64,000 nucleotides of DNA from Pavona decussata (taxonomy: Eukaryota): contig CDRNST010000018.1 in the NCBI GenBank assembly GCA_977016875.1, positions 372,001 to 436,000 on the forward strand, in the 5' to 3' direction. A program made the position numbers and the translations under genes. Below, piece by piece: positions 55,201 through 61,008 of this stretch. Below the pieces are notes generated by a model. That model worked only from the letters and a program-made list of their open reading frames with translations, ran no database searches and was not told where the DNA came from. The stretch's first letter is position 1; each line of letters starts with the position of its first letter.

Positions 55201-57042
55201 TGCCTTAGCTCAGCTTGCCAAGTATGATCTAGATGCTGTGGGGGTGCGCAGGTTCTTTCTCGGGTAAGATAGGTTGAGGAAGGTGAGTCTTGGCTTACTT
55301 CTTTCGCCTTGAGAAGTGGGCTGCTGATCGTTGGATCTCTGCTTTGAGAGAAGATGATGGTTCTGTTATTTCTAATCCTGATCAATTATGTCGTTCTTTC
55401 TCTGGTTTCTATTCTTCGTTGTTTACCTGGTGTCCCACTGATCCTGTTGCTTGTGATCTTCTTTTGGATAATTTGTCCTCTGTCCTCCCTTCTGACCAGC
55501 CTAAGGTCTGTGATGGCCCGCTTTCCCTTGGTGAATGTTATTCTGCCCTTTGTGGGATGGCTAAGCGTAAAGCCCCTGGGCTGGATGGCCTCCCATTGGA
55601 GTTCTATGTCAAATTCTGGAGTGTCCTTGGTTCTGATCTTGTTTCTGTTTTGAATTCGTGCTATGATTCTGGTCGTTTGTCTTTCTCTCAACATAGGGGT
55701 GTTATTGCTCTTTCTTTTAAGAGGGGTGATCGCCTTGATCCTCGTAACTGGAGGCCGATCACCCTTCTTAACGTTGATTATAAACTTACATCGCGTGTAA
55801 TTGCTGGTCGACTGCTCAAAGTCATTCATCTTGTTGTCGCTGTAGACCAGAAGTGTGGTGTTCCTGGATGCTACATTGGTGACAATGTGGCTTTTTTGCG
55901 GGACGTTGTTGATTATGCTACCTTGTCCAACGTTCCTGTTGCTGTTCCTACTCTTCACCAGGAAAAGGCCTTTGACCGTGTTGATTAGGATGTTATGCGG
56001 GCAACCTTGCTCAAGATCGGTTTTGGCCCTTCCTTTCTTTGGTGGGTTGACCTGTTTTACTGCGGAGTTTAAAGTTGTGTTAATGTTAATGGTTACCTTT
56101 CCTCGTTTTTTCTTTGTCTCGTGGTGTGCTTCAAGGTTGTCCTCTTTCTCCTTTGCTGGATGTTCTTGAGTCTTAAGTCCTGGAGGCCAATATTCATGTC
56201 AATCCCCGGGTCAAGGGTCTTTGTCTTCCTGGTCTTTCTGAGCCACTTTCTCCTATATCCCAATACACTGATGCCACCTCTCTATTTCTCACGTCTGATG
56301 ACTCTATATTGGCCACCTTTGAGGTTTATGCTGTTTTTGAGAGAGGTTCTGGGTCCAAGCTCAATCAGGCTAAATCTAAGGGCTTGTGGCTTGGTCCCTG
56401 GTCTGGTCGTGTTGATCCACCGGTTGCGCTTGATTGGTCTTCCACTAAAGTGAAGATCCTTGGTGTTTTCGTTGGTCCTGGGTGACCTTGAGCAAAATAA
56501 CTAGCCGCCGCGCATTTCCACTGTTGATGTTAGGTATAGGAACTATAAGTACGCGCCTCTCAAGGGACTGGACACGAGATGTGTCGTCAAGATGACAAGT
56601 GACGTAAGGAGAAGCCATGTGCGTGCTCGAGAAGCAAAATAGACTCGCGTTGTGAAAATAAGTTGTGAAACCGTAATTTAATATCGTAAATACTCTTGGA
56701 AAACACCAAGCAGTGTGGATTTTCTTGTGTAACATTCTGGGGGCCTGTCCGGGAGATTTTTCTCGAAGAAACTTGATGGAAATGTACCCGTTTTGACGAT
56801 CGATTGCTTACTGTGTGCGAGGACTCGCGTTTGTCGCCGCCATTACGCATTCACTTTGGATTTCAATGGACAACGATTTATTAACAGGATTTAACTGGTT
56901 GTAGTTGAAGCGGACATTTGGTGTGGACAGTTTGGCAAAAGATAGTGGAGCCTGAATTTGAGGCCAGGGAAGGTAGGAACATTGTTTTATTGGACTTTGT
57001 GCATGTGGAAATCTGTTCGTGTTGTTTACAAGTAAAATTGAA

Positions 57043-58378
57043 ATGGCGGAGGAACAACTGATTCTTCTGGATCGCAAAATTTTGTCGCTGGACCTGAGTG
57101 CGTTTTGTGAATTTGCTCTTCATGCTAAAGTTGAAAAGTCGGCAGTAGAAGGCAAGGGGAAATTAAGTGTTATTCGGTCTATCAGACGAAATATTGAGGA
57201 TTCATTCGAGAAGTTGTCTGGCGTTGATCAAATTGAATTTGTTAAGGGGTTAATTGCACAGTTGGGTCCTGAAGAAGCTCAAAAAAGAATTGGGTGATTT
57301 AGAGTCTAAGCAGCAATTAGTCGAGGAACAATTGGCCAAAATGCAGAAAGAAAAGTTTCCTGCCTCAGTGAAAGACGAAGACACGATCAAGTTTCCTGCC
57401 AAGGGGGTTGAGCAAAGCATATTCCGCAGGGATTTCAAAATACAAGGAGTGGTGGGTGACCCTGGTCAGAAAGATAAACTGGGTTATCAAGCTCTAATAT
57501 CCCAAATAGAATCAGGGCTTGCCAAGGGGTACTCAGACAAAGAAGTAGTTAGTGCCGTTGTTCATGCTGTGCAGCCAGGCCTGCAACTAAGAAGCTACCT
57601 AGAGAACATGACTGACCTGACCCTACCCAGGCTGCGTAAAATTCTTCGCTTCCATTTTCATGAGAAAAATGCCACAGAACTTTACCAGCTTCGAACAAAC
57701 ATTGCCCAACAACCCAATGAAGACCCTCAGTCATTTCTGATGAGAGCACTCACTATTAGGCAAGAGGTAATTAGTGCTTCAAAAGAGTCCGATAGTGGGG
57801 TTAAGTACGATGCCTCCTCGGTGCAAAGTTTGTTCCTGCATGCCTTGGAAACCGGTCTTGCTGACGAAACCATTCGTGCAAAGATAAGACCACTCACTCA
57901 GAACCCAAAAGTCGCAGATGAAGACCGCATTGGAGCAATGAGCCTAGCTATATCTGCAGAAGCTGAGCGAAGTAATAAGTTCAGTTTTACCAGCAAGGGA
58001 AAGTCTGCAAAGGTTCTCACCGTTGAAGGTGCAGTGGAAGCAAACACGAAGAAGGAGTCGCAGAAGGACTCACAGGTCCTAGCAACACTAAAAGCTGTAC
58101 AAGCGGAGCTGGCCACAGTGAAATCAGAAGTTAAAACTCTTCATGACGTAGCAAATAACCAGAAGGCAGACACCATGGCACCTGGTCCTACTGGGAGGGG
58201 AGCGAGGGCTGGAGCAAGACCACCTGGTTGCCAAGAGTGTAGAATGAATAGGAAAGGTGACCGATGTCCACATTGCTGTCTCTGTGGAGGCTTGAACCAT
58301 ATTGCCCGCTACTGTCAAACCAGGCTCAGAAGCTATCCGGGAAACGCATCCAGGCTACCCCCGCGGGACAGGGAGTAG
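57043..58378 (+). pseudogene. gag: gag-like ORF with C-terminal CCHC knuckle (one frameshift near 57285)
   Basis: MAEEQL start; QQPNEDPQSFLMR major-homology-like motif; CCLCGGLNHIARYC. Confidence 0.8.
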
Positions 58379-58380
58379 CC
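58339..58380 (+). promoter_or_regulatory. -1 programmed ribosomal frameshift signal
   Basis: In-phase G_GGA_AAC (58339-58345), 7-nt spacer, hairpin GGCTAC-CCC..GGG-A-GTAGCC (58353-58380). Confidence 0.85.
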
Positions 58381-58407
58381 TTGCCAGAGAAAGAGAAGTC
58401 CCACCAG

Positions 58408-58530
58408 TGTAGTGGTTGCCTGGAGTTTGATTGCCGTAAACAGTTGCTACAGTGTTCAGCCTGCCAGTCTGTTCGATATTGTTCTGAGCATTGTCAAAAG
58501 GTTCATTGGCCAAAACATAAAGTGTTATGC
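58408..58530 (+). CDS. MYND-type zinc finger in the -1 (pol) frame
   Basis: CSGC-x11-CSAC-x5-CSEHCQKVHWPKHKVLC matches the zf-MYND pattern CxxC..CxxC..YCS..CQ..HW..HK..C. Confidence 0.88.
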
Positions 58531-60144
58531 AAAGCAATCAAAGAGTTCTCTGAGAGAGAATCGTCTAAAGAAAAGTAGTTAGGAGATGCACAAGATAGAG
58601 ATGGTATGTGGTCTGTAAGGAGCTGGGCCTGATCAACCCACTCCAGGATTTAAGAAGCAAGGAATCATAAACAAAAAAGGCCACTTTCGTAAAGTTTTGT
58701 TCTGTATTGCATGCCAAATGGGAGAGAGGGGAGAGTGTTAGGTATAGGAACCATAAGTACGCGCCTCTCAAGGGACTGGACACGAGATGTGTCATCAAGA
58801 CGACAAGTGACGTAAGGAGAAGCCATGTGCGTGCTCGAGAAGCAAAAAAGACTCGCGTTGTGAAAATGAGTTGTGAAACTGTATTTTAATATCGTAAATA
58901 CTCTTGGAAAACACCAAACAGTGTGGATTTTCTTGTGTAACATTGAGAACACTCTTGCTGCTTGGAAGGGCCGTTCCTTATCGTAGAGGGGTAGAGCCCT
59001 TATGATCAATGCCCAAATCTCTTGTTCACATGCGCTCTTGGGTTTTGTCTGAACTGTGCAATTTTGGTACGAAGTTCCATCCGCTGCAAGATGAAGCCAC
59101 TTTCGTGGATGAGCAAATAAAGGTCGAAGTACTTCGGTATAAGTTGTATATTTTCTCTTGTCACATTAATGTGAACCTAGCTCAATTATATCATCTTGCA
59201 GGCTAACTGATGAACAAAATAATGTTTTACGCATTACTGAAAAAGGCCACAACAAGGTCAGCTGGCTGGTAAAGAACTGCACTTAGCCAGAAGGGGGTGT
59301 GTGTGGTTTGTTACGTGCCAAACGCTTCCCGTGGATTTCCCCAGCTGGGAACATTTTAGTACTCGTGCCTCAGTTTGACCGTGAGTTTCTTCCAACATTC
59401 CAGGGACACGGCTCAGACGGCGGCAAAAAAGGCACCCGATTTGAAATGAAGTTTGTTTTCAACTAAGGCCGGTGTCTCAATAAATGAACTCCTCTGTAAA
59501 TGAGCTACCCAGGAGGGACCGCACATCATTCTCCTTGCCATATGGTAAGGCAGGTAGGCGAGAGCTTAAGTTTCAAGCAAATTTTAGCGAGGTTTTTGAA
59601 GTGCTGTCCTTAAATGACCGGCCAAATTTCATTGAAATTCAACTTGTAGTTTCCTACCTTTCCATTAACATAATACAGTGATGTACGTGGACCAGCTGCC
59701 GAGAGATAAACCGCTCAAAACAGCGTTTGGAAGCACTGAAGAGCATTGAAAACACAACAAAACACACCGGGTAAGCCTTTTCAGACTTAAGTATATTTTT
59801 GTTGGGTTTTTTAGGGAAAATTGTTGTCTAAATTTCGATTTAATTTTAACTCCATACAAACTCTTAAATCACGCTTGCATGGTAACCTGTGTCACATACG
59901 CTTTGGTGACCTGTGGTAGCACTGGAGTGCTTGAGTGAGTGTGTTTTTGCTTTTTAACTTGTTCTATTGTCCTGTCTTGTCCTGTTTTTGATTGTTATGT
60001 ATTGTGTTTGTTGGGAGCGGGGTTCCATCCCCCAATGAGGTTTGACGTGCTGGTGCCCCTCCCGTTTAAGGTGATGTTTGTATTTGTCTGGTGGCCATTG
60101 CACTTTTCCACTGGGGGGCCAGCAATTCACCTTTATAACAAAAA

Positions 60145-60869: not shown

Positions 60870-60942
60870 TCTCCTGTAGCTCAGTGGTAGAGCATCCGAA
60901 CTAGTAATCGGAAGGTCTTAGGTTCGACTCCTGATAGGAGCA
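60870..60942 (+). tRNA. tRNA-Thr(AGT)-like sequence, probably a tRNA-derived repeat or pseudogene
   Basis: A box TAGCTCAGTGG, B box GGTTCGACTCC, loop CT-AGT-AA; extra base in the anticodon stem and imperfect T and acceptor stems. Confidence 0.6.
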
Positions 60943-61008
60943 CTCGGATTTCTTTTTTCCGAGTATGCCTGCGTCACTTTCTAGAATAATCATCATTCTT
61001 GTCATGAT

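Follow-up and report, generated by a model that had tools for sequence, protein, structure and literature searches.

A Decayed Retrotransposon Copy in Pavona decussata Belongs to a Ty3/Gypsy Family Whose Pol Begins with a MYND Zinc Finger

Introduction

What does a retroelement encode when its gag ends at a putative frameshift site and the next frame opens into a zinc finger of cellular type, only to close shortly afterwards? The question is raised by positions 56528-58943 of a 64,000-nucleotide stretch of Pavona decussata DNA (GenBank assembly GCA_977016875.1, contig CDRNST010000018.1, positions 372,001 to 436,000, forward strand), hereafter the window. An initial annotation, made from the letters alone, described there a long terminal repeat (LTR) element encoding a Gag-MYND finger fusion through a -1 frameshift, and offered two explanations: either the Pol of a parent element begins with MYND, or the locus is a propagating non-autonomous element. 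In this work, we compared the locus with the genome in which it lies, with related Pol proteins and with related metagenome loci. Our findings support a model in which the window holds a dead, internally deleted copy of a Ty3/Gypsy family whose Pol starts with a MYND finger and would be reached by a -1 ribosomal slip, a reading to which we assign a probability of roughly 0.88.

The intact family

When the 602-Mb genome was searched with the internal region of the window element, 12 further copies were recovered, giving a family of 13. The matches of the other copies are interrupted at the same places, where they carry some 60 bp more in gag and a further 4.7 kb or so past window position 58603. 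Eleven copies were extracted end to end, nine of which measure 7.16-7.20 kb and are the full-length partners of the window copy; 4-bp target duplications flank all ten other copies for which both ends were read. An LTR probe of the same genome returned the 13 copies and one diverged relative (L044, contig C241; LTR 82% identical), which is 5'-truncated and without the gag/pol junction, and no solo LTRs.

In five copies both reading frames are open: a gag frame of 487 codons is followed by a pol frame of 1623 codons, -1 relative to gag. The intact Gag has 465 residues from the first Met and one CCHC knuckle. On the intact Pol, Pfam places the MYND finger at residues 50-90, the protease (PR) at 138-238 with a DTGA motif, the reverse transcriptase (RT) domain RVT_1 at 510-667 and RNase H at 759-891, followed in the C-terminal half by the integrase (IN) H2C2 domain (1041-1094) and rve core (1111-1208). 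The first of the two explanations is thus borne out, the full-length copies carrying MYND-PR-RT-RNaseH-IN in a single -1 frame. LTRs with TG..CA ends, a short target duplication, a primer binding site (PBS) and a polypurine tract (PPT) in the window copy, and the PR-RT-RNaseH-IN order in the full-length ones, identify the family as a low-copy Ty3/Gypsy LTR retrotransposon of about 7.2 kb, with a Pol that begins with a MYND finger.

The Pol tail of about 375 residues past the integrase core is without a Pfam match. In L037 and its relatives it carries a short basic motif, R-P-x-R-x-R-x-x-P-x-x-F/L-T-Y-x-x-x-G-x-P, kept in most MYND-bearing lineages and followed by a proline/aromatic-rich end; this could be a second docking element. 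Several more Gypsy families with a MYND-PR arrangement occur in the same genome at 40-49% identity, some with open frames of 1557 codons.

The window copy

The features of the window copy, in window coordinates, are the following.

56524-56527, no strand: target-site duplication TTGA, 5' copy, read from the letters; the same four bases follow the 3' LTR
56528-56734, plus strand: 5' LTR, 207 bp, TG...CA ends, a direct repeat of the 3' LTR
56738-56755, plus strand: PBS, 18 nt, beginning TGG three bases past the 5' LTR; identical in all copies
57043-57269, plus strand: 5' part of gag, from ATG to the junction of a 62-bp deletion, from the list of open reading frames (ORFs) and alignment to a full-length copy
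57270-58378, plus strand: 3' part of gag, out of frame with the 5' part, stop TAG at 58376-58378, from alignment
58274-58315, plus strand: CCHC zinc knuckle at the nucleocapsid end of Gag, C-x2-C-x4-H-x4-C in translation
58339-58345, plus strand: slippery heptamer G_GGA_AAC in the gag zero frame, read from the letters
58352-58381, plus strand: predicted pseudoknot stem 1, arms 58352-58358 and 58375-58381, from covariation
58365-58402, plus strand: predicted pseudoknot stem 2, GGGAC at 58365-58369 (in the stem 1 loop) with GTCCC at 58398-58402, from covariation
58408-58531, plus strand: MYND zinc finger (C4-C2HC) in the -1 (pol) frame, full PF01753 profile
58576-58578, plus strand: private premature stop TAG in the pol frame, where base-by-base alignment shows GGG (Gly) in a full-length copy
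58597-58601, plus strand: junction of a 4,697-bp internal deletion with AGAG microhomology, from alignment to a full-length copy
58720-58735, plus strand: PPT adjoining the 3' LTR, read from the letters
58736-58943, plus strand: 3' LTR, 208 bp, TG..CA ends, direct repeat
58944-58947, no strand: target-site duplication TTGA, 3' copy, read from the letters

All features listed in the initial annotation are confirmed at the level of the letters: LTRs, PBS, PPT and TTGA duplication are intact and in place, the LTR pair showing 8 mismatches (96% identity); the heptamer lies in phase at the end of gag; the -1 frame encodes an intact MYND finger and stops at 58576-58578; and PR, RT and IN are all missing between that stop and the PPT. 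The window LTRs are 95-98% identical to those of the other 12 copies. The reverse complement of the PBS equals the terminal 18 nt (with CCA) of a transfer RNA (tRNA)-type gene end that occurs seven times in the genome, with a T-loop consensus (GGTTCRAC) ahead of it; by analogy the primer is probably tRNA-Pro.

Lesions were mapped by comparing the window copy base by base with a full-length copy. A 62-bp deletion at 57269/57270 shifts the gag frame, which is consequently split over two frames, 57043-57297 and 57254-58378; gag does end in the region of the heptamer, as annotated, but it is not intact. The TAG that closes the frame behind the finger replaces a GGG and is private to this copy: the aligned full-length copy reads on into the protease, and the pol frame is open across this point in the other copies as well. 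Just beyond, the 4,697-bp deletion at 58600/58601 has removed PR, RT, RNase H and IN, and immediately ahead of the PPT 37 nt have been swapped for 7 nt. The LTR pair, with its 8 differing sites against 0-1 in most other copies, is the most diverged of the family, so that the window copy is the oldest copy examined. Given the 4.7-kb deletion, the stop after the finger and the frame-breaking gag deletion, it encodes nothing usable. It is one dead, internally deleted and frame-broken copy, and the Gag-MYND fusion that had been taken for the product of the element is a decay product of this copy rather than a designed protein.

The second explanation, a propagating 2.4-kb Gag-MYND family copied in trans by full-length partners, could draw on a window copy whose LTRs, PBS, PPT and target duplication are usable, and on the presence of autonomous partners in the genome. 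A 121-bp probe laid over the deletion junction nevertheless matches end to end only in the window, the other copies matching it as two halves 4.7 kb apart, and one copy only matches the internal region end to end. The gag deletion and the stop after MYND are also private to a copy with the most diverged LTR pair of its family. The initial annotation had held that a single deleted copy would refute a non-autonomous family, and a single copy with this junction is what the genome contains. With the junction unique in 602 Mb we reject the non-autonomous family, whose probability we regard as negligible, and keep to a dead copy of an autonomous MYND-Pol family.

Identity and conservation of the MYND finger

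The finger of the window copy matches the whole MYND profile (PF01753, positions 1-39 of 39; E = 3.7e-10; 40.1 bits against a cutoff of 22.7), and the finger of the full-length Pol scores 34.3 bits. In the window finger the eight zinc ligands of the C4-C2HC type are present with their usual spacing, and the nearest solved sequences are the MYND domains of SMYD2/3, ETO and DEAF1, with E values of 1e-6 to 1e-3.

A word-based protein search with the first 260 Pol residues returned 99 Pol-length proteins, of which 41 carry MYND, complete in 29 and cut by the start of the gene model in 12. In all 41 the finger lies 49-62 residues before the DTG/DSG of the protease, in homologues that may be as little as 37-55% identical to the query. 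These MYND-bearing proteins come from coral and marine assemblies; the only named matches among them belong to the stony coral Oculina patagonica and to a contig mis-binned into a 'Gammaproteobacteria' metagenome-assembled genome (MAG). The latter accounts for RUA05110.1, a MYND-Pol retrotransposon protein filed as 'Gammaproteobacteria bacterium' MAG. A fish Gypsy Pol is likewise publicly named 'nuclear receptor co-repressor 2'.

Throughout this diversity the eight ligands are invariant, whether 15 full Pol proteins are aligned (mean column identity 48%) or 16 DNA-derived translations of the N-terminal region (38%). In the two pairs with unsaturated synonymous divergence (dS), Nei-Gojobori ratios of nonsynonymous to synonymous substitution (dN/dS) are low for the finger (0.14 and 0.24), as they are for the adjacent protease region (0.13 and 0.11). 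These observations bear on whether the finger is a recent passenger, an exon that this one family picked up from the host and that does nothing for the element. Although the closest solved relatives are indeed cellular (SMYD, ETO and DEAF1), the same position of the finger in dozens of Pol lineages only 37-55% identical, the invariant ligands, a dN/dS as low as that of the protease and a doubling of the finger in one lineage make a passenger very improbable. The sequence comparisons instead indicate that the MYND finger is a mark of a large and diverse Ty3/Gypsy clade, and that it is held under selection similar to that on the protease.

The distribution of the finger was followed on an unrooted FastTree of 147 Pol sequences, with the N-terminus left out and without an outgroup. 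In its main clade 59 of the 62 rows of known state carry MYND, and some of the rows scored as MYND-less prove to be decayed fingers, one with an internal stop and others with the first half only. In three metagenome loci (L080, L081 and L089) only the first C-x2-C...C-x2-C half stands ahead of the protease while Pol is still open; by its sequence the finger appears to be decaying there. True MYND-less sister lineages also exist, with the same frameshift cassette and a short linker only before the protease, and in a fish-type lineage Gag and Pol lie in a single frame. At the other extreme, the metagenome locus L093 (3375-4274) has two tandem MYND fingers between the frameshift site and the protease. 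On the simplest reading of these patterns, the finger would have been gained once, long ago, in the transframe linker and later lost in some lineages.

The frameshift signal

If Pol begins with a finger in the -1 frame, how would ribosomes get there? Of the 80 related metagenome loci, 25 preserve the MYND-Pol frame intact, and 23 of these also have an upstream gag frame. In each of these 23 relatives, pol is -1 to gag, with overlaps as short as 10-49 nt, and gag carries a CCHC knuckle; in 22 of the 23, diverged as they are, an in-phase shifty heptamer stands at the same place. Most have GGGAAAC, three GTTAAAC, two AAAAAAC and one GGGAAAG. The distance from the heptamer to the codon of the first finger Cys is 60-69 nt in nearly all relatives, and 255 nt in L093 with its extra finger. 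Right past the slip site, the pol frame shows conserved residues, G-K and then one whose codon begins with C. The G_GGA_AAC heptamer is among the shiftiest for eukaryotic ribosomes (PMC5009743).

The structure that follows was initially read as a plain hairpin. Its first stem stands, but it is part of a larger fold. Stem 1 comprises 7 bp beginning 6 nt after the heptamer, and all seven pairs have changed on both sides among 16 diverged elements; pairing is possible in 92.9% of cells, falls to 18-55% if the partner is shifted by 1-3 columns, and is not equaled in any of 500 shuffles. The 3' arm of stem 1 contains the gag stop codon in the window copy. For stem 2, the loop word meets its exact complement downstream in 15 of 16 elements (2000 shuffles: mean 2.1, maximum 7), with four co-varying classes of arms, GGGAC/GTCCC, GGGC/GCCC, GAGG/CCTC and GGGG/CCCC. 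This covariation in both stems points clearly to an H-type pseudoknot at standard spacing.

Pol might instead be made by another route, either internal initiation at ATG 58264, which is in the pol frame upstream of the finger, or a spliced pol mRNA. Neither fits easily with a heptamer, a 6-nt spacer and a co-varying pseudoknot kept across elements in which the overlap of the two frames, as short as 22-49 nt, often contains no ATG, nor with the conserved residues right after the slip, and we hold such routes to be highly unlikely. In the -1 slip that we favor, ribosomes would shift on G_GGA_AAC and so reach Pol, stimulated by the pseudoknot 6 nt downstream. This route implies that the finger would be present only in the minority Gag-Pol fusion, between nucleocapsid and protease. 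With its natural compensatory variants, the heptamer-pseudoknot cassette offers a comparative set for the study of -1 frameshifting, and one that bears on the origin of the PEG10 signal considered below.

Protein model and proposed function

An AlphaFold model was built for the first 240 residues past the slip site from a 16-row alignment. The transframe start (residues 1-19) is disordered, and the finger is predicted with a per-residue confidence (predicted local distance difference test, pLDDT) of 81-92, separated by a linker (77-91) with pLDDT below 50 from a confident protease domain, the best structural matches of which are retroviral and DDI1 retropepsins. In the model, the finger of Gag-Pol would thus be an independent module between nucleocapsid and protease, joined to the latter by a linker of about 15-20 residues that is probably flexible.

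Four points weigh against our account as it stands. Both -1 frameshifting and its stimulation by a pseudoknot are deduced from sequence and covariation. For the 102 nt that follow the heptamer, the minimum free energy fold does no better than that of shuffled sequences (z = -1.14), in a program that cannot model pseudoknots. The tree is a quick FastTree without an outgroup, and a single gain with later losses is not proven by it. Lastly, a motif search did not find a conserved PxLxP motif in Gag or Pol.

The last point matters for what the finger may do. Cellular MYND fingers bind PxLxP-type peptides; if this finger does so too, the ligand is likelier to be a host protein, as no such motif is conserved in Gag or Pol. 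We therefore propose, tentatively and at somewhat less than even odds, that the finger docks a host protein; more generally, it would serve as a docking module for a partner protein, of which a host protein is the most likely kind. A different possibility is that it acts in cis, controlling the dimerization or activation of the protease or the packing of Gag with Gag-Pol. Retroviral transframe peptides delay protease activation, and the finger too is in a transframe position, some 30 residues ahead of the protease fold with a low-confidence, probably flexible linker in between, and is predicted to occur only in the minority Gag-Pol product. That same linker, however, separates what the model gives as distinct modules; Gag and Pol have no conserved PxLxP motif to serve as ligand; and the MYND-less sister lineages keep frameshift cassette and protease with nothing but a short linker. 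An action in cis appears to us rather unlikely, though it deserves to be kept in mind beside docking to a host protein.

Genomic context

The element has been inserted into the RT region of a non-LTR retrotransposon (long interspersed nuclear element, LINE; window 55290-56527 and 58948-59010). The upstream ORF, 55290-55985, has a weak match to RVT_1, and a LINE-type RT reading continues over the insertion in both flanks. Further downstream, ARAGORN reports an unusual tRNA-like gene at 60870-60943; its anticodon has two bases, and it is probably a pseudo-tRNA or else a piece of some other small RNA.

Comparison with known systems

The family shares with other Ty3/Gypsy elements (Metaviridae) its short LTRs, 4-bp duplication, tRNA-type PBS, PPT, CCHC Gag, PR-RT-RNaseH-IN order and H2C2 plus rve integrase, and it differs from them in the complete MYND finger that it encodes between frameshift site and protease. 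Among relatives without MYND, the closest are fish proteins named 'Gypsy retrotransposon integrase-like', with Gag and Pol in a single frame. All but the finger is standard Ty3/Gypsy biology, and Pol is known to vary in its accessory domains, the chromodomain being the classic case. Full-text literature searches, which did not extend to curated repeat libraries, gave no description of a MYND finger in an LTR-retrotransposon polyprotein. Judged from the comparisons above, the MYND finger at the start of Pol is real and selected, and it is apparently undescribed.

The closest known analogue of the frameshift cassette is that of PEG10/Edr. The signal of PEG10, a domesticated Ty3/Gypsy gene, consists of GGGAAAC and a compact H-type pseudoknot (PMC13622457, PMC5009743). 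Both cassettes have the same heptamer, a similar spacer, a stem 1 followed by a purine-rich loop and, in the PEG10 consensus, a GGGAC in the loop with a GUCCC downstream; that these two words form stem 2 in PEG10 is our unchecked reading of the Rfam consensus. The likeness is a resemblance rather than membership in RF01090 (Edr/PEG10 frameshift signal): the sole Rfam match in the region is to that family at 58339-58404, reaching exactly from heptamer to stem 2, where its 21.4 bits fall below the gathering threshold of 45, and the relative L048 gave no match to it. A deep link between the two cassettes is possible on this sequence resemblance.

Compared with the cellular MYND domains of SMYD2/3, ETO/CBFA2T1, DEAF1 and ZMYND10, the finger has the same C4-C2HC ligand spacing and gives significant matches, but here it is a stand-alone module in a retroelement polyprotein. 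A practical consequence is that MYND-Pol genes can be miscalled as host MYND proteins or as bacterial proteins.

Accessory domains such as the chromodomain and dUTPase are informative on target choice and on the handling of host factors. In chromoviruses, a chromodomain at the integrase C-terminus steers integration. The parallel lies in a small cellular-type domain for docking to chromatin or protein, fixed in Pol across a whole clade; the difference is that the MYND finger precedes the protease, at the other end of Pol, and would probably be cut away from the integrase. In its most far-reaching form, the comparison would make the finger a clade-defining host-tethering module of cnidarian and other marine-invertebrate Ty3/Gypsy elements, a functional counterpart of the chromodomain by which the particle or pre-integration complex docks onto a host co-repressor or chaperone, with effects on integration site or escape from silencing, and would make the PEG10-like pseudoknot an ancient cassette shared with the lineage leading to mammalian PEG10; we regard this combined proposal as speculative and improbable. 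Overall, the window copy is ordinary debris, yet the family to which it belongs shows that a whole, diverse Ty3/Gypsy clade has fixed a docking-type finger at the start of Pol. A MYND finger in this transframe position is a new and easily tested case of an accessory domain, to be set beside the chromodomain at the other end of the polyprotein.

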